Of a stretch of 64,000 bases of DNA, positions 38,619 to 55,600 are shown in pieces. Each line of letters starts with the position of its first letter. Position 1 is the stretch's first letter. The DNA is from Pocillopora damicornis (taxonomy: Eukaryota): the NCBI RefSeq assembly GCF_003704095.1, contig NW_020843680.1:1-64000 (forward strand), read 5' to 3'. Both the position numbers and the translations under genes were made by a program. The notes beneath the pieces are model-generated. The model did no database searches. It was not told the DNA's origin and saw only the letters and a list, made by a program, of their open reading frames with translations.

Positions 38619-41534
38619 TCAAAGCTTTTTTTCTCCGGGATGGAATGGGTTTGGTGCACATAGCGGCAAGGAACTAAGAGTATGATTGACAACTCGGTGA
38701 TGAGCTTCGTCAGCTCGAATGGCCAAAATGACGTCACGCATCCTTGAACCCTCCTATGAATAACAAAAACAAGAAGGAGAAAGAAAAGATGGATATAAAA
38801 CCTTTATCATTTCAGGTTGAAAAATATTTTGTTCTAACTTGCGGAAAACTCTTACCGGTAATTTCCAGTAATTAACAGCAATCTTGGGAGCCAAAAGATT
38901 TTCCCACAGAGGCAACTTACCGCTGTCGATACACTACAAACATAGATGAATGAGTCAAGATAAGATGAAGTCTGGGGAATATTTAGAAGACATACGAATT
39001 ACAACCCGGCTAAGCCAACTAGAAAAGACGGTAATCTCAATCTTCAGGGTGCTCTGATACCTCAATACAATGAGTATACGTTTTAACAGCTTCCTCCTCC
39101 AGGTAACCAACAAATCTGTGGCAAAACTTGGGGCTTATCAGGTAGGCCAAGAAAAACAGGTTTACAAACGTTCCTGAAGAAAATAAAGCCATGGAAATGT
39201 TCAGAAACGCGCTTAAAAAAAAAAAAAACGATTCTGAAGGAGAAACAAGTTATTCTTATCCTTAGTATAACTGTACATAAGCACTTCCTGGTCCCTTCAC
39301 ATACGGGACATTGAGGCTTAAGCCACCTACCTTCAAGATTGGAAAGCTTTCTATTCTCCTAAATGAACCCTCTGCATCCTCTTGTTGATAGTATCTTGAA
39401 TTATTCACGTAATGATTATTCCATCTTCGTCACTTTTGATTCTTGTATTTATATACTTCATTTGATGGTATAAAAATTAAAAAGTCTTTATTCTCCTTTG
39501 ATATTTGTTCGAAAGTATTATAAGCAAGTTGGGTGAATTTCTGGACTGATCATTCTTGAGAGCCAATGAGTACAGTAACAATCTTGTACCGGCAGTACGC
39601 TCAAAGTATCATGACATAACGAATCCAAAATTGGCTGTGAAAATGATTCACGTAGAGTATAAATAAATAGTATGAGGTACCTTGAGCTAGGAGAATTGCT
39701 CCCCGAAATAAAATCCCAGGTTGCTTCATTTCCAGGGCTGTCATCAAGTGCATTCTCTCGTTTTCAGCCTCCTCTAAAGATTAAAGAAATCAATTGACTT
39801 CGAGGTGATTCTGTTGAAAGCCACCACAGTTCAATTTACAATCAGCGCACCCTTAATTCAAGTTCGCTTACCCAGAAGTGTGTGTATCCATCCATTATCT
39901 CTCTGGAGCCTCCTAAGCGCGTGGAAGTGTCTTGTCATGCCAGCAATCATTCCAGGAACTCCTGCTATTGTCTCTAACATAATGATCCGACTGTTGATTT
40001 AATTAAGCAGATATGTTGTGTAAACGGTACCACAAAAAAAAAATCCAGCTTCAAAAGAAGCTAGTCAAAAAAGTCTTAGCCACGCTGATTTCCTCCGTGT
40101 ACAACGATGTATTTTTCCAATTAGAGACAAATTACAAAAATTACGCCACCTTTAATTGCGGCCAGCTTTGGAATCAAGACGTGGCCCAGGTCAGTTTACT
40201 GGTTGTACAGACCGAAGTGGGGGGGCTAAAGTGTCGGAAAACCAGCTCAAACTTACTTGAGCCAGCGGTTTTCGTCGAGCTCCATGAAGCGATACAATGA
40301 TATGATGTCGAATGCTGCTCTCAAGGCCTGAACACTTTTGTATGCAAGCTGTAGGTTAAGAGAAAGAATGAAATGGAATTATCACTCAACTGACTACAAA
40401 ATACAGATACAAAATTACACACGAACGATTTCCAGTAAATTTCTCCACCACAGTACCATCTAACCAATAACTTAGTAAAAATTAAACGAACGTAACCTGG
40501 GATGTGTAGGGATTATGTAGACATATTATAAAAAGCTCTGAAGCACCGTGGCAGGTAAGCCATATTTTGCTGCATGGCATGACGTTCAATTTATAACCTT
40601 TCAGTCTCGAAACTTACAAGAACATATGACTTCTGATCGCTAGGAACAAAAACAATACCTCATCCACAAACTTTTGTGGTTTTTGGTGAGTAATTTTCAC
40701 GCTGCGGACATCCTCTGCCGTCCTAAATGAAAACAAAAAACAGCTAGTTTAAAAAGCTTGAATTTGTAAGTGAAGTCTTTAATTTCTCACGTAGTTTTAT
40801 GAACTCTGAATGATATATCAATAGATGTAATAGATAGTATCGTGAGATTACGTTGTCTAGAGGCTCGTACCAGACTGGGTGTGGCATTCTGTAGGCTTCA
40901 TCCCCAGTTGTGCTTCCATTTTTACCAAAATGACTGATGGCTGTTTCCTTGGATGGAGTGGTTACCACTGGCGTTGGTTGTTGGACTTCTGATGTACTTT
41001 GATTTAGAATGGCATTTGTGGAAAACAAGGAAGTCTGCAAGTAACAAAAGTTCCTACTAATGGTAATAATAATAATAATACTTAATATGATAATAGTAAT
41101 AATAATAATAATTGTAAAAATCATCATGGTAATCATAATATAACGGCTGTTTACTGAGAACGAAGAAACGAAATCATTTCCCCGGCGGAGGAAAATATTA
41201 CTTTCGCGAGTATGTGCTCCTTTCGTGACATACTCCTTTCGTTAATTTTTCCTTGCGTAATGTATGTGAACCCAATATCCCTTATATTTTTGCTTTATTT
41301 CGTCATATTTTACTCGCAGAACCCCTGGATAACTATGATTTATTTTCTCACCTTAATCGCTATCCCTTATAACACTGTAAGTAGTCTATAACTTACCCCT
41401 GTTCGCCGTGGCTGTGCAATTCCGCACAAAAAACCTCTCAAGAAATCGACCTCAGAAATCGGTTTGACGAAAGTAAAACAATTTTCAATTCCTCTCATTG
41501 AAAGAGGAACCCGCTGGAGTCCAGTTGTGGCCAT
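38619..41534 (-). CDS. AOX: Alternative oxidase, paralog A (9 exons, 331 aa, complete)
   Basis: Exons 41534-41397, 41034-40871, 40722-40659, 40348-40257, 39990-39872, 39773-39681, 39173-39061, 38933-38856, 38753-38619. All diiron motifs are present ([39 protein letters not shown]), plus the animal-type C-terminal NPFHPGE. Confidence 0.95.
41062..41142. repeat. Degenerate (TAA)n microsatellite in AOX-A intron 1
   Basis: gtaataataataataata...gtaataataataata... Confidence 0.85.
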
Positions 41535-45000: not shown

Positions 45001-48000
45001 GCCTTTTTATAAATGACAGCAATACTCCAAATTCTCTCGCATTCAAGCAAAAGACCAGTTTATCACAGTGACTGTTATTGATTTGTGAATGTAATAATCA
45101 ATACACAGAGGCTTAAATCATGTCTTATAGGAAAGTTTCAATACAAAACTTCCTTTTTTTATTTTCCTGTATGATATGTAACACTCCTGTGTTCCTTTTT
45201 TTGTAATTGTTTTCTTCAGGTCTTCATTGGTGGTATGCATGGTGACTTGTGCGCAACATATGTAGTTGGTTCTGTTGACAAACAGGGTCAGAGATTACTA
45301 GAAAGCTGTCAGCGTAGTCTTGATGCTGCAATCAATATCTGTAAACCTGGAGTACGGTTTTCGTTGATTGGAAACACAATTGAGTAAGTAGAACAACTAA
45401 ATTTGGCTATTTTTGGAGAATGTTGCCATACATTTTCATCTCTAATGTTGGTAATGTTTGTGTCTGGTAATAGTTTTTGTTTGTTAGGGCTCTTTCATCA
45501 GGAAAGTTTGATTTGCTTCTAGATCTGTGGCTGGGAAGGATGGATTCACAGTTTGTCCCAATTTAGCAGGTCATGGTATTGGATCATACTTTCATGGACC
45601 TCCAGAAATTTTGCATACAGGTTTGCAGTACTTGTAAGCATGCACAACTCCAAAGTTATGATTCCGGTTATTTTTATTTACCTTCCTCTTCAAAATGAGA
45701 TCCCCATAGGTTTTCACACAGGAACTGAAAAAAATTGTTGATTCATATTTTTCCTAGATCATTTGATAAAACCAACAATCTTAAAGCTTTATTGTTCTTG
45801 GCTCAGCCTCCAGGCAGTATGCACTATTACCAATGGAAAACTGGATGCCACTTGGATATCAATTTTTTTTTAAAGGAATCCAGTAAGCTAGATAGGCAGT
45901 ACAACGTGTCTTTTATTGCAGTTTCATCAAATTTTACTCCTCCCCCAGGAATCTCATTTAAAAGGTTAAAATTTTGTATGAAATGTAAGGCTTTAATTTC
46001 TCATATTCTTCTCTTCCTCTTCTTTTCACAATAGCAAATTATAAACCTGGGAAAATGGGACCAGGCATGACATTTACTATTGGTAAATATCTTGACTATC
46101 AAACAGCTATTTTATGAATAGGTATAATATTACCTGGCAAGAACCTCATTAAGGTAGACCTTGTTAAGCCCAAACTGACAGTTGGCATGGTTACCTGTTA
46201 CTTGCCTTTTCTAAAGCACTACTATTCAAGTATTGATTTCTTAGCTCAAGTATCCCTGGTGCTCTCAGACTTTCTCATGGTGCAGATCAAAGCATAATAG
46301 CTTGAGCTGACCACTTAACAAGAATGATTATGCACGAAGAAAAGGTGTAGGTGAGAGTTTTTGCTAGTGGGACTTTGTTAAGGCAGCCACAAGAGAAATG
46401 TTTTCATTAGCATGCTGCCTAATTATAAAGGTCGTATATGTGAAAATGTATCTTTCATTTCATTAAATTTAGCAACTTTGTTAATATTTAATAGTGTAGT
46501 TTGATCGTTCGGGTGAGTGTAGTGCTGAGAAGGATTGTTGTCGGTAGTGGTGACTGACGTGTCGACAACCTCAGCGGAAGTCATCATCAGAGTCAAGTGA
46601 ATAGATGTTGTTAGTCGAATGTTCTTAGTCCGGTTTGCATAAACTGATTGTTCAGTTTTGCCGTGATTTTATTGGCTGCAAAACTCGAGTGGCGTAGGTC
46701 GTTCGTGATTGGTCGGTCTCGATCTGTTAGTGAAGTTGGATCGTTCTATTCGGTTCGTCTGTAATGTAAATGTCATGAATGAGTCGTTTGTATGATGCCG
46801 GTAGTGGTTGACACCTGTTGAGGGGAATCTGTTCCAAGTGAGTCGACCAGCTTTATAGGGTCAGTAGTTAAAAGTAGTTGGTGCTGTAGGTTACGCATTG
46901 CACAGAGTCCCAGTCAATAGTGTGGTTCGTAAGTTGGTGATGTTCAGCAATGTGATTGTTGACATCGCCTTTCCTCGTCGCTCGTTTGTGTTTAGTTAGT
47001 CTAGTTGTAAGGTTTCTACCAGTCTCACCGATGTAAGAGGCGTGGTAGTCGGAGCAATTGATCTTATACACTGCAATTACTGCTCCCTGTCTGTTCCTCG
47101 GTTCGTCTTTGTCTTTGACGTTAGTCAATAACTGACGTAGTGTGGTAATAGGTTTTGTGAGCGACGCGGATATTGAATGGTTGTAGGATGAGCGAGATGT
47201 TCTCAGATATGCCCTTTATGTACGGTATGATTACTGTAATTGTAAGAGTTGCGTTGTTGTTAGCGGTGGTAGTAGTAGTAGGTCGGTGAGTGTCACGTTG
47301 GATGAAGTCTTCGTTGTAGTTGTTCTTTGAAAAAACGCGGTCAAGGTACTTGTTCTCGTCGGATAAGCTGTCCGTCGTGTTGCATACTAGTTGCGCTCGT
47401 CGCGTAAAAGTCCTGATAGTTGTGGCTTTGCGTGATGTCGGGTTGTAGGACAACTCGTCCAGTAATTTGTCGGTATGTGTCGGTTTCTTGTAAACTGTTG
47501 TCCATAGTGAGTTATCGTCACGGCTTACCAGGTAGTAAACTGTATGTCAGTGTTTAGTCCGTTAAGGACTATCGACAACAGTCCTTCTCAGGACTACACT
47601 CACCCAGACGACCCAAACTACACTATTAAATGTTACCCCCGGGTTCAAACCACTTGCTGTATTTGTTAATATTCAGAACCTGTCCTTTGTGAGGGATCTC
47701 CAAAAATAGCTATCCTAGGAGATGGTTGGACTGTTGTCACAAAGGATGGTAAAAGGTTGAGTACACCAGTTTTTATTCAATCAGGCGTAATAGTTAGTGA
47801 TATATGAATACAATTCAGTTACATTTGTCCTCATGTGGCGCGCTGCAGAAGAATAACTATTAGCTGAAAATTGTGCTACTTCAAGTTTGAAGGCTCAGGA
47901 GCTTAAGGGGCTTGAGGAACCATTCTAGGCCAGTATAAGTCAGGATCAAGGGTTTGCTTGTGGGGAATTTTTACCAAATTCAAGAAATGAAAAGGTCAAA

Positions 48001-48348
48001 AATGTACCATGGCAAAGCATCATTTCAATTCTTACTTAAGATTAATGCAACTGGTTGGAAAAGATGAAGGACTACAAACAACAACTTTATGCCTTAAAAT
48101 ATGTCCTGCGAATACTGATGAGGGAAAGCTACTCTAACATCCTTGTTGTTTCTTCAGTGGATGTTGAGACGAGTGTTATCTGTTAGCTCATTCCAATGCA
48201 GACAGACAGTATTGTCATTTTTAAACTTCTCATTTTTCATGTATAATTTTTTTCCGTCTCTTTCTCTCTCAGGACGGCACAGTTCGAACACACTGTTTTG
48301 ATAACAGATTCTGGTGTTGAAGTACTTACTGCTGATACCAAAGATTGA
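42065..48348 (+). CDS. METAP1D: Methionine aminopeptidase 1D (mitochondrial type); first exon uncertain
   Basis: Approximate exons 43070-43115, 43605-43831, 44235-44382, 44689-44731, 45220-45383, 45523-45620, 46035-46082, 47677-47755, 48273-48348. Motifs: [94 protein letters not shown]. Phase-compatible start exons exist at 42065-42113 and at ~42798-42816. Confidence 0.92.
46489..47661 (-). mobile_element. 5'-truncated Penelope-like retroelement (RT C-terminus plus GIY-YIG endonuclease, frameshifted) with inverted terminal PLTR copy
   Basis: Minus-strand ORF remnants YKKPTHT..., IPYIKGISE and [25 protein letters not shown] (GIY-YIG). There is a ~68-bp inverted repeat (46482-46549 vs 47568-47635) and a 12-bp TSD tttgttaatatt at 46477-46488 and 47662-47673. 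Confidence 0.9.
46551..46595 (-). ncRNA. Degenerate minimal type I hammerhead ribozyme in the Penelope LTR
   Basis: TGACT-CTGATGA-TGACTTCCGCTGAGGTTGTC-GACA-CG-TC-AGTCA: stem I, CUGAUGA core, stem II and a palindromic stem III are present. The GAAA core is mutated to GACA. Confidence 0.7.
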
Positions 48349-49653
48349 CATTGAAAAAAACTAAGGAAGAAGAGTTTTATTTTATTTTGTGTTTTGTGAA
48401 GAACATCACAGATAAACAATTAATGAAACAAATTCTGCCTCCTCTGTGGTAATTTCAAAATATTTTTGTCTTTTTGCAACGTTTTGTGAATCAAAACTTA
48501 CAAGGTCATATTATTCCAAGTTGTGTTAAAAGATTAAAGATGTGTTTTCTTAACTTACTCTTTCTACATTTTCTTTGTGAAACGGAATCCTACTTTTTGT
48601 TTGAGGTTGTTTGACTTGGATATTTTTTCTTGGTTTAAAATTTTTTCAAGAGATTTTGATTTTTACTGTCCTTTGCTTCAGATTCATAGTAATGAATAAA
48701 AGAGGTTGGAAAATAAAAATGAAACTGCTTCAAAAATAAAAAGATAAAATGTTAGAAGAAAAAACGATACTCTTCAGTCTAGTCAGGATGGCTTCCCATT
48801 GATCAGGATCCCTTCCCGTTTAAACAATTGGGTCAAAAACAGGGAAATCATTTAATCTTACAGTAAGATTGATGCTCCAACTTTTTTGGTGAGTCTAACT
48901 GTTTTATTTCAGACTCAACATTTCTGACTTATCTTTTAAGGCTCAGGGAAAGAGAAGGGAGGAAAGTCTGAAACTTGATTGCTGGCTCGTCAAAATTATT
49001 TTATCCTGCATAGGGTTTTTCAGTTCATGAATACACCTCACCTATTTTCGATTCGGTTTTGTTCTTGTGTTTACTCAGAAACAATTTTGCTCTTCTTTGG
49101 AATTCCTATAGACCTTATAGCATCTTGTGCATCAGATCTGGAGCCACACAATATGCACAGTGTTCTTTAAAAGTACCAGCGGACAGTGTTTTCACCAGCT
49201 ACTTGTTTCTGAAACACTTGCAACATAAGCAGTAAAACACCTGTGCGGATGTGAAACACATTTGGCAGACGTTCTCTTATGACTGGCCTTAAAGAGTCGT
49301 GAGAGTATAGTATGTACCAATACTTCACAATAACCAAGAAAGTTTTCCCTGTGGTAAAGTACGTTGTGTTGCTTGCACACACTGCATGCCTATGTGTTAG
49401 CTGTAAGTCCATCATGCAGTGCGAAACTAATCTCGCACCAGTGGCACACATTTTTGTCGTTTCGGTGTTGCGCCATTCCTTGATTATTAGGAGATAAATT
49501 CCTCTTCCTAAACGATTTGTTCACGGTTTGGCTCTAGCTAAGGTCGAATTTTCTGGTTTTATCGATTACTTTACGAGAATGCATCTGAAGAGTTCTGCTG
49601 GACGTCCAAAAGGGAAGTGTAAAGGAGTAGTTGCTTTGACCAAGAAAGACAAC

Positions 49654-49758
49654 ATGGCGGCTGAAGTTCCCCTCACCAACCGCCACGTGGAAAAGCCGGT
49701 TACTAGCGGCTATACTTTCTGTGCGTCGCCTCTGTACGAATCCAAGCCTCGTCTTTGA
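49654..49758 (+). CDS. ORF1/uORF of the bZIP gene (34 aa, ends CTT-TGA-C)
   Basis: aacATGGcggc has a strong Kozak context. It encodes MAAEVPLTNRHVEKPVTSGYTFCASPLYESKPRL*, and the stop lies 5 nt before the donor CTG|GTAAGA at 49763. Confidence 0.65.
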   Translation: MAAEVPLTNRHVEKPVTSGYTFCASPLYESKPRL

Positions 49759-50754
49759 CACTGGTAAGATTTAATTATACGTAAACGGCCACTTTTCCTT
49801 TGTTGTCTCTGGACTTTGCATGCTTTCCGAAGAAGTGAACTACAGGAACACTAGATCAATCTCTTGATAACATCGCAAAAATTGTTTACAGGAAATGCTC
49901 TGAAGTTTGAAGTTTCACCTGTTAGATTTTTAACTAAGTCTTTTGAAAGGACTTTTGATGTTGATAGTGGCACACATTTTGACGATCGATCTGAACGAAA
50001 GTCCTATTTCTCGGCCCAATCGGTGTTTTACAACTAACTCGGGAAACAACCAACTCATCATCTTGAAATACGGCGAACTTCTCTGATATACCCCCTCTTA
50101 AGTGCTATTTTCAAACTTTTAACTGATTAATTAGATCGTTTCGTGTCTTTCAGCAATAGTTAGTTAATTTTCCCCATTTATTACTTAAACTTTCATCGCT
50201 ATTTGTTCTTCCGAGAACTTTGCTCTCCTATTGTGACACCTACCTTTTAACCTGAGATACACGGACAAAGGACATATTCATAAATGGCATCTGTAAATCT
50301 CTCAACCAGAATAGATATGGACTTTTTTGCAAGTTATTGGATACTTTTAAATCGAACATTAAGACCTTTCCTTTTAAACGTTTCTATATTTGATATGTTA
50401 TATAATTATTTTGTTGTTTATATTGTTTGAAACTTTGTTGCTTAAGAACTTTCTTCTATAAAAGTTTTGTGTTGATATTATGTTACTTACTTATTTAAAA
50501 CACTGTTTGGTACTCTGTAGAAAGAAAACCATACAAGTCATATATTTTATTATTGTTATCATTATTTAATTCTTAACTGTATATCAGTTCATTTTTTCTG
50601 TTTTTGTAAAGAGTGAAATACCATTTTAACCCAAAAGTGTTTTAAATAGAAATTGGGCCAAGTTAGGGGTTAATGAGGACCAGTGAATACCTTATCTCAA
50701 GGAAGTTGTGTTATTAACAGTTCAAAGCGGTAACATATCTTTACCTTTCTGTAG

Positions 50755-51446
50755 GGGTTTATGACCTTGCTTCCCCAAAAACTGAAGGTGATCTTCCCAA
50801 GACTTCAGTTCCAGATGAAGGTGACAGCCTTTGGTCTGTTGATTCTGTTCCAGATTGGAACAAGGCAAATCCCGGAGAACTTTTTTTTGACCAAGTGGCT
50901 GAACTTGAGAAGCTCATACCAGGGGAGAGAAGCAAGGGACACTGTTTGGAGGAGTCTTGGATGGCAGATGTGGAGTTGCTTAAGAGTGAAGAGACCATCA
51001 ACAACTGGACTGGTCCAGAAGAAAAATTTGGTGGAATTGACCAACCTGATAACATTTATGTCGGAGCACAGAATGTTGGCTTGGATATTTGTGGCAAAAG
51101 GGAGGTGGAAAGCAAAGCTTTCATTATGATTGAGCAACAAACACTTAAGCATTCAGATGTGCTGAATGGGGAGGCAGCAGGAGCACTATTTGATGTCTCC
51201 CAAGATTCTCCTTCATCAGTTGGAAGTTCTTGCAGTGATGAAGTTTCAGACAAGAGAATAAGGAACAACCAGGCTTCAAGAAAGTTTCGTCGTGCAAGGA
51301 AAGAAAGAAATAATTCATTGTTTGTGAGAGCATCAAAGTTAGAGCAGGAAAACCAGGCCTTGAAGCTTCAAGTTAATCAGATGCTTCAGGAAGTAATTTC
51401 TTTGAGGTCTATGCTCTCAAATAATACTTTTCCCAGTCAATTTTGA
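50755..51446 (+). CDS. bZIP transcription factor (ATF4/ATF5- or PAR-like), main exon
   Basis: The frame is open from the acceptor at 50755 (GVYDLASPKTE...LEESWMADVELL...) to the basic/zipper region KRIRNNQASRKFRRARKERNNSLFVRASKLEQENQALKLQVNQMLQEVISLRSML. The first in-frame ATG is only at 50961. Confidence 0.88.
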
Positions 51447-52609
51447 CTTTTTTCAATCAAGATTTGGTTTCTTATTTTGTTTAAGTATACCAACAATTGT
51501 GTGAGAAAAGTTTCAAAGTTGATCACTTCATAGTAGTCTTATTTAATTACTGTCCCAAGAAATTTACATTTAAAGCATGTTATGACCACTAGTGTTAGAC
51601 TGAAAGAGTTCTTTTCAAAAATCAACATGCAGCTTTTAACAAAGTTCACTGTTGTAATCTCAAGACTTAATAGATTGTGTGTTTGATTACTTTTTTATGT
51701 CATCTGTGCTGCTTAAAAAATCTAGAAGTAGTACAATTCTCTGGTGTTGGGTTAAAATACCCACTTTAGAACTCGCACACTATTCCAAAGTATATTCTCA
51801 ATTAGATAATTTTTTTGTAAGAGTTAGCATGTAACATTTATGCTGTTGTTGTGCAATGTTTTTGTAGTTTCCATAATTAGTTCAACTAGTTGAAGTGTAA
51901 TTTTGAAGGAGTCATAGGACTGATTCTGATTAAAAAGTGTAAATTTGGTGTTCCAATGACTATGTAATATGATTTAGACTTAATGATTATTCTTATGTGA
52001 TAGGATTTCTTTTGTCTATTAAAATGTTTAGTCATGTCAGTAAAGGTGCTTACCATATTTCTTTTGTGTGGTCATCAGATTTCTACCAACCAAGCTAAAT
52101 TATTGGTAGTCCATATTTGACAAATTAAAGCCCTGGGTGGAAACAAATGTAATTTGAAGTGGCTGGCTAAAGATAACATGGAGAGTCAGTGGATTTCAAC
52201 TTAATCATTTCCCTTTTTGCTCTTGTTCCTTTGTCACTTTAGTACTCCAGACTGATCCTAAATAACTCTTCACACTTTCTCAAGTGGCCATAAAACAAGT
52301 CACAAACCTTAAAAAAGTTGTGGTGGACGGATTAGTGTTACCACTGTACCAGATAATATTTCGTACTACATCCTTGATGTGTGCTTAGTGGAAAGTAAAA
52401 TGAAATTTGAACCAAGGATAAGGAACCCAGCGGACAATGGTAATGAAATTTAATAATCGCGTGTTAAACAGTTTCCTTTAGCGTGACGTCCTCTGGATTA
52501 GAGAAGCCTAGGAACTAGTCAATGCAGTTACGCAGTACCCGATGGTGGCGATGTTAAATTCGAGTTTCTCTCTCGCTGACTAATCGTTGTCCCCACTGTG
52601 CGCGGTGGA

Positions 52610-55600
52610 ATGCTTCCCACGAAGACCCGACAGTTTTTCTCTCCGACCATCCTGTTCGCTCTCAAGTCGTCCTTGAATCGGCGTATTTTGCCAGGGTTTA
52701 GGGCGCTTCAAGATGGCGGACTGTTGTTGGAAACTCCATTGTCCAACTCATGCACTGTAAGCTCTACAAGTTGGATAAGATAAGAACTTTATTATTGTGT
52801 CGAAATCGCTAGCATACAGTATATTAGCGAACGTTGAACTGATTATCGTCACTTAAGTGGTCGGCAACTTTTTTTGTTTTTGTTTTGGTTCTTTTTGCAT
52901 GAGCCCCATTGCAGGGCGAAATTCCCAGACATGTTTATTTGGTGTGAAATGACGAAAACATAAGCTTAATTATGATGATCATGACGCACTTTTGTTGCAA
53001 AGAGGTTGAACTGTTAAAGTGAATGGAAATATGGTTGAAGTTACTTACATTATTTGTGCATCAGCTTTTTTCGTTGTAAAAGTTATATCTACAACTTACT
53101 GCTAGGAATAATGCAGAAAGTTCACGGTTATTAAATGCCGGTAAAACAACTGCAACTGCAGTCTTTTCTACAGATATGGCCGCATAGTGGTGTTTGCCCA
53201 CAGATATCGGGTCAAATCCCTCTCAAATCCTATCCTGTTTTGTAAGGGAAACGAGAAGTTTCTTTTTATACACATTTTTTATTCATTTTTTATTTCAGGT
53301 TCGTTTACTATCGACCACTGGTGTCTCAAGACAAAAGGATTTAAAACATTTCAAAGCAGGAGCCGAGAAAAAAGACAGCGTAGATAATGATCATACAAGG
53401 GGCAACGAGATCTACAGAATGCCACATCCTATTTGGTAGGTTTATTTTGCAAAAATACATAATGGAATAATTTGGACAAGAAATCTGAGCCCCAGAGATA
53501 TTTTAGGTACAAATTAATTCATGATTGTCTTTATTTTAGTCAAAGCTTGTTCAAATTTTAGACTGATGTGTGAACCCAGGTGGTGTACACTCAGGTTACC
53601 ATATTTCCTCGAGTAAGTGTCTGAGCGCTTATGTTATATTTTGGCTAAAAGGAGAGCACTTAATCAAGGGAGGTGATTGTTAAGTTAGCCCAGCAATAGG
53701 ATATAAATTAAAAGAACAGATAACATGCATAAAGGAACTCTGCCAGCACATGGAGAAAGAAATAACTAGAGGTGACATGATGGAAAAGAAACTATTCTTC
53801 TGTACTAATCCTGCTCTAGTTTAAGCTTGAAAAGTTATATATAAAGTACCAACACATACAGGTTTTCTTTGTATCCCTACTATTAAAGAAAGCAAGGGAG
53901 GAGGGGGTAACTCATTCCAGAGAGGCACAAGTTTGACATCTCAGCCCGGGGGGTGGACTCTCATTTGGGGAGGGTGATTTTTAGAGAGTGGGTGTTTTTT
54001 GGGGAAGTATAGTGTGTTTCTCTGACAAAAGAAAATGACATGGACTTTTGATATTTAACTGAACAGAAATAAAATAGTTACATATTAACCAACTGCTAGT
54101 GCGACACTATTGGAGATGAATTGCTATTACTGAACTTGCAAAACTTTTGCAAGACACTCTTTGATTTCCCCAACTCCTGAATAATCCTTATGTTCAGACT
54201 TTAATTTTTGTCACTGTAACAAACACTAATTCTCAAGTCAACTTCCATGGTGCAGACAATTTAAATACATTGAAATAATTTATCACAATGTCAATTTTGT
54301 GCTAAGATTTCAAACTTTACAAGTCCTCGGTAATATTTTTTGTAAGGTCAGAGCAAGAAGTTAATACTGTAGAGATTACACATCAAGAGACAAAGACAAA
54401 AGTTGACAAGGTATTCTTGAATATGGAAATCAAAAAATGTTTACTGTACATCAAACATCTTTTCATTACAATTACTACAGTTTTCCTTATTAGTGAAAAT
54501 CATCAGAACCTTTGTCAGTGCAAGGGTTGGCCTGCTGGATTCCAAATTGAAATGTCTGAGTTTTGGTCCAAGTGTTGAGAAAGCATGTTATCAGACTGAA
54601 AAATTGTGAGGGGCAAAACTTAAAAAAAAACTACTAGATTAGGAATGGACTGGCATCCTATCCAGGAAGGAGTTATAATACTCCTGGTCATCTAGATTAA
54701 GCTTTCTCACAACTGTTTGGCCCAGTATGGAAAGTTTCATTCATTCATGTATTTATAGATCCATTATTTTTATTAACTGTAGGCTGACAAACAATAATCA
54801 TGAAGAACCTAAGTTGATCTCAGTACACAAAAAGTTCATATATATAGATTTATTTTCTCTTCTTTAAATTTCAGATTGCCTATGGCTGTGTGCAATTCTT
54901 GAGGATCGCATTTGATATTGTTTCTCTCTATAAAGTTGGAAAAATGACAGAGAACAAGTGGTTGAAGTAAGTTAGCATTTTAGCAATCTTTTAGTCCTTA
55001 ATTACCTGTTGTTTCAGGGAAAGGACAATATTCAATTGGTCATGGTCTCATGCCTCGGTGTCAGGATATTTGGGGACATCTTCATTGAGGCATTGGTACT
55101 CATGTCACTCAGTTTATTAAATGAGGACTGTCAGGTGACCATGGAGAAACTGTCTACCAACAAATTTATCATGGAGATCTATAATATTGCAAATTGAAGT
55201 TATATTGTCTAGGGGATGGAATTAGAAGATCCCTTCATTCATTTAGGTTATCAGGTAGTTCATAGGATCTTAACTCCTAACTAAATTTTAAAAAAGTCAT
55301 TTCCAAATGTGATGTTAAAATTTCATGTTAAAAAATGCGTTTTACAATAAGCTCTATTTCCCCTTATTAACCGCTAAATAGTTCGCCGTGTCGTTATTTC
55401 ATGCTGTTTTTTGAAAATGAAAATAAATGTTTTATATTGATGTACAAAATTAAAGCAAGTTTCTTTTTGGTAAAATGGAGCATCTTATGTCTTCACATAA
55501 AAAAATAGGAACAGTGATGTGTTTTCTATTTCCCAACAGTCGTATCATTATGTTGGAGACAGTAGCAGGAGTGCCTGGAATGATTGCGGCGATGGCTCGT

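Follow-up and report, generated by a model that had tools for sequence, protein, structure and literature searches.

How is a transcription factor made from a messenger RNA (mRNA) whose first AUG opens another reading frame, when its own frame has no conserved start codon? This question is raised by a bZIP gene on the forward strand of a 64,000-nucleotide (nt) stretch of the genome of the coral Pocillopora damicornis (contig NW_020843680.1, positions 1 to 64,000), which we refer to as the window. Exon 1 of the gene carries a short open reading frame (ORF), ORF1, that ends in UGA; the bZIP ORF lies in the +1 frame relative to it, reads GAC ACT G/GG GTT TAT GAC... across the exon junction and stays open to 51447. 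An earlier, sequence-only reading of the window proposed that ribosomes would pass from one frame to the other by an antizyme-like +1 shift. Our comparison of related genes leads to the same best explanation, frameshifting of the antizyme or RF2 type at CUU-UGA-C that would give a fusion protein of 291 amino acids (aa), and we put its chance of being right at about even.

One mRNA with two conserved coding ORFs

The comparison set consisted of 14 distinct taxa, namely 12 stony-coral sequences, a more distant relative (L008) and the sea anemone Actinia tenebrosa (outgroup DNA sequences, n=2). The DNA of the relatives was either spliced (six transcript types; L001-L006, L012, L013, L015, L022) or came from unspliced or genomic contigs (L007-L011, L014, L016-L021), to which the window itself was added. 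Each exon was searched separately, and where a spliced sequence was needed a natural spliced transcript contig was used. RNA evidence was taken from assembled contigs, not raw reads, of four runs from four different studies (X1, X7, X11, X14) placed on 47000-52800; contigs lose rare isoforms, so a minor splice form could escape this survey.

The mRNA has two exons (Table 1). The splice between 49763 and 50755 is seen in three of the four RNA runs, with contig depths at the joint of 86, 138 and 20, and no RNA contig from the four runs has an indel in 49578-49763 or 50755-51700, so that the junction proposed by the sequence-only reading, and its freedom from indels, are confirmed. The position of the intron, 5 nt past the ORF1 stop, is kept, and the donor TG/GT and acceptor AG/GG are found at five other genomic loci. 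Run X1, a poly(A) metatranscriptome, has an unspliced contig (49464-50783) that crosses the intron at about one third of the exon 2 contig depth and has no spliced joint; this contig could be intron retention or DNA carry-over. A similar unspliced contig was seen in another species (L014).

Table 1. Features of the bZIP gene in the window
Feature	Position	Strand	Remarks
5' leader	49449..49578	+	without ATG; RNA contigs start at 49449-49464
ORF1	49579..49758	+	59 codons + TGA: MHLKSSAGRPKGKCK...NMAAEV...GYTFCASPLYESKPRL, stop; conserved in 14 taxa
Invariant block TAC GAA TCC AAG CCT CGT CTT TGA CA	49735..49760	+	last seven sense codons, stop and next two bases
Candidate +1 shift site CUU-UGA-C	49753..49759	+	P-site Leu codon, A-site stop, C as fourth base
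First bZIP-frame codons past the proposed shift	49757..49763	+	GAC ACT G/, to the end of exon 1; D-[T/N]-G conserved
Exon 1 end and donor	49763	+	G/GTAAGA; from sequence and RNA contigs
Intron	49764..50754	+	991 nt, GT..AG, phase 1 in the bZIP frame; joint in X7, X11 and X14
Acceptor and exon 2 start	AG 50753-54; exon 2 from 50755	+	from sequence and RNA contigs
bZIP ORF, exon 2 coding part	50755..51447	+	GG + 229 codons + TGA; GELFFDQVAELEKLIPGE upstream of 50961
Possible hairpin 3' arm CCCCA	50773..50777	+	Ser-Pro of LASP; pairs with UGGGG (49762-49763 + 50755-50757)
bZIP domain (basic region + leucine zipper)	51234..51392	+	Pfam PF07716 bZIP_2
3' untranslated region	51448..52046	+	poly(A) signals 51929 and 52018; RNA contigs end 52005-52049

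A scan for ATG finds only two in exon 1, at 49579 and 49654, and each is in frame with ORF1; the former is the first AUG of the mRNA and the latter has a strong context (gacaacATGg). The sequence-only reading opened ORF1 at the second of these, counting 34 codons to the ending CGT CTT TGA C. That ending stands, with the TGA at 49756-49758, but the true, conserved start is 49579, from which the frame reads MHLKSSAGRPKGKCKGVVALTKKDNMAAEV...YESKPRL and its conserved beginning MHLKSS.... Because ORF1 opens there and has 59 codons, the predicted fusion has 291 aa rather than 266. Among the 14 taxa ORF1 is 59-73 codons long from its first in-frame AUG and 59-66 from the conserved MH start. Selection on ORF1 as protein is seen in the ratio of non-synonymous to synonymous differences (pN/pS; pooled pairwise Nei-Gojobori values from codon alignments of ten species), which is 0.59 in frame 0 as against 0.91 and 1.08 in the other frames. 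The N-terminus, MHLKSS.GRPKGKCK, is conserved and carries synonymous changes, a pattern that is unusual for a purely regulatory upstream ORF (uORF). Conservation over the whole length of ORF1, together with a basic N-terminus that in corals has an AT-hook-like GRPKGK, fits a protein segment better than such a uORF.

The second ORF encodes a bZIP factor, as the sequence-only reading held: residues 160-212 match Pfam bZIP_2 (PF07716) with E = 5e-10 and 39.8 bits against a family cut-off of 22.3. Three other statements of that reading were verified, that the bZIP frame is without an AUG in exon 1, that it has an in-frame stop at 49637-49639, and that its first ATG in exon 2 is at 50961; two out-of-frame AUGs of exon 2 precede the latter. 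The region upstream of 50961 had been described as coding in appearance, and purifying selection supports this. Its 68 bZIP-ORF codons have a pN/pS of 0.49 (1.01 and 1.19 in the other frames), and the remainder of the ORF has 0.54 (0.93 and 1.03). The most conserved motif, GELFFDQVAELEKLIPGE, also precedes 50961, with FFDQVAELE invariant in ten aligned sequences and present in Actinia. No conserved Met column precedes the leucine zipper in the ten-species alignment. The Met of 50961 is found only in the window and L013, its place being taken elsewhere by G, D, V, P, S, V, C or D, and in other species up to eight out-of-frame AUGs come before the first in-frame AUG, which is offset from the ORF1 stop by +163 to +373 nt. 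With Met 50961 unconserved, coding sequence upstream of it and the offset variable, a downstream AUG is therefore not the conserved mechanism by which this ORF is translated.

The bZIP gene is single copy, and other matches in the genome are to the bZIP domain only. Exon 2 alone as query found 39 coral bZIP_2 proteins, and 39 to 47 orthologues were found overall; a ten-species profile adds remoter homologues, among them Actinia tenebrosa LOC116307396. The protein cluster members nearest to the window are from Stylophora pistillata (83% identity), and other clusters hold Porites evermanni and Acropora. ATF4-like motifs suggested by the sequence-only reading did not hold up: LASP is preceded by variable residues, and ESWM keeps its Met in just two sequences, those nearest to the window. 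Among solved chains, a set that has no full-length ATF4, C/EBP-beta is closest to the bZIP domain (E = 1.4e-3) and ATF4 is weak (E = 0.22), and orthology with ATF4 is therefore not shown. Membership of the antizyme family was rejected for the second ORF, for which Pfam gives bZIP_2, bZIP_1 and one weak, sub-threshold match to an unrelated family. A 122-codon ORF in the third frame (ATG 50761; 50761-51129), which overlaps ATG 50961 in the manner of ATF4 uORF2, was rejected too, as it is not conserved. It has 17 codons in the 97%-identical L001 and lacks its ATG in L013, and in other species a different AUG at +5 opens 9-47 codons in the same frame; going by these sequences it is probably incidental.

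The end of ORF1 and the candidate shift site

The block that closes ORF1 is nucleotide-identical in all 12 stony-coral sequences. L008 has a single change in it (CCT>CGT), and Actinia, with TAC GAA TCC AGG CGT TGT ATT TGA CA, has four. ORF1 ends in the 14 taxa as ...Y-E-S-[K/R]-[P/R]-[R/C]-[L/I]-UGA-C, with the donor 5 nt further on; CUU-UGA-C occurs in 13 of them and AUU-UGA-C in Actinia. The layout of ORF1, NUU-UGA-C and +1 ORF is common to all 14, with the TGA at the same position, and in the 12 stony-coral sequences and L008 both the distance of 5 nt from stop to donor and the phase of the intron are invariant. Whether orthologues would keep ORF1, CUU-UGA and the +1 register was part of a check proposed by the sequence-only reading, and this comes out in the affirmative across the 14 taxa, with AUU in the place of CUU in Actinia.

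The constraint on synonymous sites is local. Invariant residues are encoded by more than one codon in none of six cases within the block, in six of eight in ORF1 outside it and in 31 of 35 in the bZIP ORF. Downstream of the stop, with ORF1 no longer coding, no variation is seen in the C of GAC, the T of AAT/ACT or the junction GGG, and the CTT, TCC and CCA codons of the LASP motif show little synonymous change. Overall, synonymous sites are frozen for 21 nt 5' of the stop and for about 5-25 nt 3' of it; the 5' part is also explicable by dual coding. The 3' part contains an invariant UGGGG/CCCCA element whose UGGGG begins 3 nt past the UGA in spliced mRNA, and the corresponding hairpin is present in the folds of most transcripts. 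Within the 234-Mb genome the block occurs once and has no antisense copy. That it might be the target of a plant-like cnidarian microRNA was considered and rejected, given this lack of an antisense copy and a number of three-mismatch matches equal to the control count.

From this pattern of conservation we infer the shift itself; its efficiency and any regulation by termination efficiency or a metabolite are putative. Scanning ribosomes would initiate at 49579 on a single two-exon mRNA and translate the 59 codons of ORF1. With CUU in the P site and a poorly terminating UGA-C in the A site, some of them would move one base forward, from CUU to UUU, and would go on to read GAC ACU G/GG GUU... 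over the exon junction; those that terminate would release the 59-aa peptide alone. A tRNA-Leu(IAG) on CUU can re-pair on UUU through G:U, A-U and I-U pairs, and UGA followed by C is the weakest eukaryotic termination context; the animal tRNA-Leu(IAG) is not known to shift. The predicted product joins the ORF1 peptide to D-T-G and the 229-aa bZIP part (59 + 3 + 229 = 291 aa), and its junction peptide following ...YESKPR would be LDTGVYDLASPK. The invariant 21 nt 5' of the stop would act as a stimulator, like the 5' modules of antizyme mRNAs, and the UGGGG...CCCCA element 3 nt past the stop may contribute too. The antizyme-like switch of the sequence-only reading thus keeps both of its ORFs, its site and its intron phase, all of them conserved, and exchanges its 266-aa product for one of 291 aa, with the shift as a putative step in both versions.

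Frameshifting and its rivals

The chief rival to frameshifting is an independent start of the bZIP ORF within ORF1, which we consider possible but rather unlikely. ORF1 would then be a translated uORF or a separate 59-aa micropeptide, and leaky ribosomes would initiate in the +1 frame inside it, in corals at ACG 49736-38 (the T of TNPSLVFDTG), giving the N-terminus (M/T)NPSLVFDTGVYDLASPK, or at GUG 49721-23, and in Actinia and two corals at a lineage-specific AUG; the invariant block would code twice, for the last residues of ORF1 and for the first of the bZIP protein. Several observations favour such a start or weigh against frameshifting. The 5' edge of the block lies exactly at (T)ACG, and dual coding would freeze each of its positions. 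Read in frame 0, each of the four differences of the Actinia block replaces an amino acid (K>R, P>R, R>C, L>I); read in the +1 frame, two of them are silent and two are conservative replacements (TNPSLVFDNG to TNPGVVFDNG). Of the five block changes in Actinia and L008 together, none alters the third position of a frame-0 codon. This pattern suggests translation of the +1 frame upstream of the stop, which a shift at the stop does not predict, and initiation inside ORF1 fits the Actinia substitutions at least as well as frameshifting does. Actinia has +1-frame AUGs at codons -32 and -17, the former in strong context; this strong-context AUG inside ORF1 (L016 position 3001) is the one used by the NCBI model. 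All 14 taxa have the ACG at codon -7, and 13 of them have GUG or CUG at codon -12. The proposed 3' hairpin, moreover, is short, and in folds of the natural spliced transcripts the energies lie within the shuffled range, the z-scores are not significant and no covariation was found. Finally, an ORF1 profile searched against 1.84 billion representative proteins returned only stand-alone ORF1s of 59-65 aa and no species in which the two ORFs form a single in-frame fusion; such a fusion is the classic comparative proof of a shift, as a supportive and not an obligatory feature. The mRNAs of stress-related bZIP factors, such as ATF4, CHOP, C/EBP and plant S1 bZIPs, are commonly under uORF control.

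Against an internal start stands the quality of the codons that it would need. Both conserved near-cognate codons have a poor context (-3 mostly U or C, +4 A or C) and lie behind two AUGs, the second of them optimal, so that under the scanning model very few initiations are expected there, while genes that depend on non-AUG starts have, to our knowledge, a strong context and leaders without AUG. A single C>T, synonymous in frame 0 (TAC to TAT), would turn the ACG into an AUG and is never observed. AUGs of the +1 frame occur inside ORF1 in only three of the 14 taxa, at differing positions (L013 and L014 have one each in addition to those of Actinia), and the peptide read in the +1 frame shows no conservation upstream of TNPS. 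Nucleotide constraint extends past the ORF1 stop, to the C of GAC, the T of AAT/ACT, GGG and CCCC, where no overlap exists, and the fixed U-UGA-C stop in every taxon is left without a reason.

An alternative donor would dispense with both recoding and unusual starts. Splicing from T/GTGCGT at 49720/49721 (phase 1) connects codon 47 of ORF1 with exon 2 in frame (...SGYTF-W-VYDLASP...; predicted peptide ...SGYTFWVYDLASPK) and would give a conventional AUG-started protein, the 49763 isoform being non-productive or regulatory. This donor is in phase, its GT is present in five of the seven non-window lineages inspected, and two public models use it, the NCBI model of Oculina patagonica LOC144659390 (MAAEV...GYTFWVANLASP) and Porites evermanni CAH3149992.1 (...GYTFRVFHLASP). 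We nevertheless hold it to be highly improbable, since the GT is missing in L012 (TTC TCT GCG) and Actinia (TAC AGC GCT), positions +3 to +6 vary (GCGT, GTGT, GCCG, GAAG), RNA contigs of the four runs have no 49720 joint, all six spliced transcript contigs use the downstream donor, and the transcript-derived cluster members listed are 239-244 or 265-282 aa long, none of them of the expected length; nor does it explain why CASPLYESKPRL is conserved as frame-0 coding sequence and why the stop after it is fixed. Scarcely credible is an ordinary uORF with a 161-aa bZIP protein begun at ATG 50961 and everything upstream as 5' untranslated region. That ATG is the first in-frame AUG in the window, and the NCBI models XP_022803855.1 and XP_029196083.2 begin at downstream Mets, but it is shared with L013 alone, out-of-frame AUGs intervene, and the 68 codons upstream of it, FFDQVAELE included, are selected like the rest. 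The chance that an assembly or sequencing indel in exon 1 has split one ORF is next to nil, given RNA contigs without an indel and the same frame relation in 14 independently sequenced taxa, in genomes and transcriptomes alike. Two further alternatives raised by the sequence-only reading were dropped. The mini-exon beginning with ATG 50284 (50284-50292 spliced to 50721) has no joint in the RNA contigs, and a TAA at 50715-17 shuts the frame ahead of 50718; the near-cognate CUG 49661 has a poor context and is not conserved, being CTC in the Porites-cluster transcript L004.

We return to +1 frameshifting at NUU-UGA-C. That such a shift would be obligatory for making a C/EBP-like bZIP factor, and would predate the split between stony corals and sea anemones, is a proposition that in our judgement is evenly balanced.

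Known systems, the surrounding locus and what a shift would mean

Antizyme (OAZ) is the classic case of programmed frameshifting in animals, and the coral gene is like it in having a short, AUG-started ORF1 that ends in UGA, a +1 ORF2 without a start, and a candidate shift at the codon before the stop. AUU, GUU and UUU are documented as antizyme P-site codons, NUU-UGA being known antizyme shift sites; antizyme mRNAs also carry conserved nucleotide modules just ahead of the site, and the spacing of 3-5 nt from stop to 3' element is crucial (PMC1874602). In the coral gene, too, the nucleotides just ahead of the site are conserved, as is an element 3 nt past the stop. It differs in that its ORF2 encodes a bZIP factor with no sequence relationship to antizyme, CUU is outside the antizyme list, an exon junction lies 5 nt from the site, conservation of ORF1 extends over its full length, and the frameshift is a candidate one.

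The heptamer CUU-UGA-C is identical to that of bacterial prfB, which encodes RF2, and in both cases termination would compete with the shift at a weak stop context. In contrast to the coral gene, prfB uses Shine-Dalgarno-like pairing with 16S rRNA and RF2 as sensor, which is inapplicable to eukaryotic ribosomes, and the two are not homologous. In the +1 sites of yeast Ty1, ABP140 and EST3 (CUU-AGG-C, CUU-AGU-U) a slippery P-site CUU re-pairs on UUN in front of a slowly decoded A-site codon, and yeast OAZ1 (GCG-UGA-C) shares the UGA-C context of the A site. The yeast sites differ in needing a special tRNA-Leu(UAG) and 'hungry' codons read by rare tRNAs.

A further likeness is to bZIP genes under uORF control (ATF4, CHOP/DDIT3, C/EBP alpha and beta, plant S1-bZIP), in which the first AUG opens a conserved uORF whose end lies near the main ORF's start or extends across it. 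Their main ORF has a conserved AUG of its own, however, whereas the coral bZIP ORF has none, and conservation of the coral ORF1 begins at its N-terminus. It is acknowledged that nuclear genes of animals have very few conserved frameshifts; a recent addition is PLEKHM2, with a conserved +1 frameshift at UCC_UUU_CGG in vertebrates that was first recognised by comparative genomics (PMC11451614). PLEKHM2 is unlike the coral gene in that a minority of ribosomes shift, at a sense codon, to give an alternative C-terminus, its main product being independent of the shift; in the coral gene a whole functional domain would depend on it.

The public proteins for this gene (P0054, P0094, P0008, P0079, P0093, P0132) disagree with one another. 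Those of Stylophora (XP_022803855.1, 160 aa) and Acropora millepora (XP_029196083.2, 150 aa) start at downstream Mets and, on our alignment, are truncations; Acropora muricata XP_067022971.1 and Actinia LOC116307396 enter the +1 frame from lineage-specific AUGs. For ORF1, look-alikes from the ESM Atlas were set aside as uninformative, their scores being below 0.9. A 59-aa database 'protein' (P0124, MYLKSFVGCLKGKCK...) is a pocilloporid ORF1 with systematic C-to-T changes, and its source is most likely bisulfite-converted reads assembled as ordinary DNA.

Exon 1 has some other features at the DNA level. An A insertion polymorphism behind 49577, in the A-run just upstream of the first AUG, is present in three of the four RNA runs and in L001, and puts an A in place of G at position -3 of that AUG. 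A perfect E-box/G-box palindrome, CCACGTGG, lies at 49683-49690 within ORF1 (codons CAC GTG GAA, H-V-E). CACGTGGAA is retained in nearly all stony-coral sequences (L005 has CACGTCGAG, L014 CATGTGGAA) and is not found in L008 or Actinia; besides coding, the palindrome could be a regulatory element in the DNA.

The bZIP gene is flanked by two alternative-oxidase genes (Pfam AOX), at 38673-39998 on the minus strand and from 55538 to beyond 64000 on the plus strand, the RNA contigs of the latter beginning at about 52527-52602. This neighbourhood is conserved, since the order bZIP then AOX on the same strand is also found in Oculina patagonica (L011, AOX from 7292). At 47568-47676 many RNA contigs break, with differing continuations and a very high summed depth; the segment looks like a multi-copy repeat and lies beside the intron of an upstream plus-strand gene (joint 47753 to 48271, gene end at about 48650-48860).

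We found no paper describing such a gene in the literature on frameshifting in coral or cnidarian bZIP genes. If frameshifting is correct, it would be a new case of recoding in a new, non-antizyme gene family, conserved across Hexacorallia, and a second obligatory and deeply conserved +1 site that could serve as a natural model for eukaryotic +1 recoding signals. The public annotations of the gene, with their truncations, unsupported donor and lineage-specific AUGs, would be corrected. Should the bZIP ORF instead be started inside ORF1, the gene would still be unusual, as a conserved protein would then come solely from a non-AUG start within a conserved translated ORF. With frameshifting at CUU-UGA-C, the output of a transcription factor would be set by the balance of termination and frameshifting and could respond to the activity of release factors, the supply of tRNA or a small molecule; reef-building corals would have a regulator, abundant among the transcripts of coral RNA-seq data, that is switched at the level of translation.

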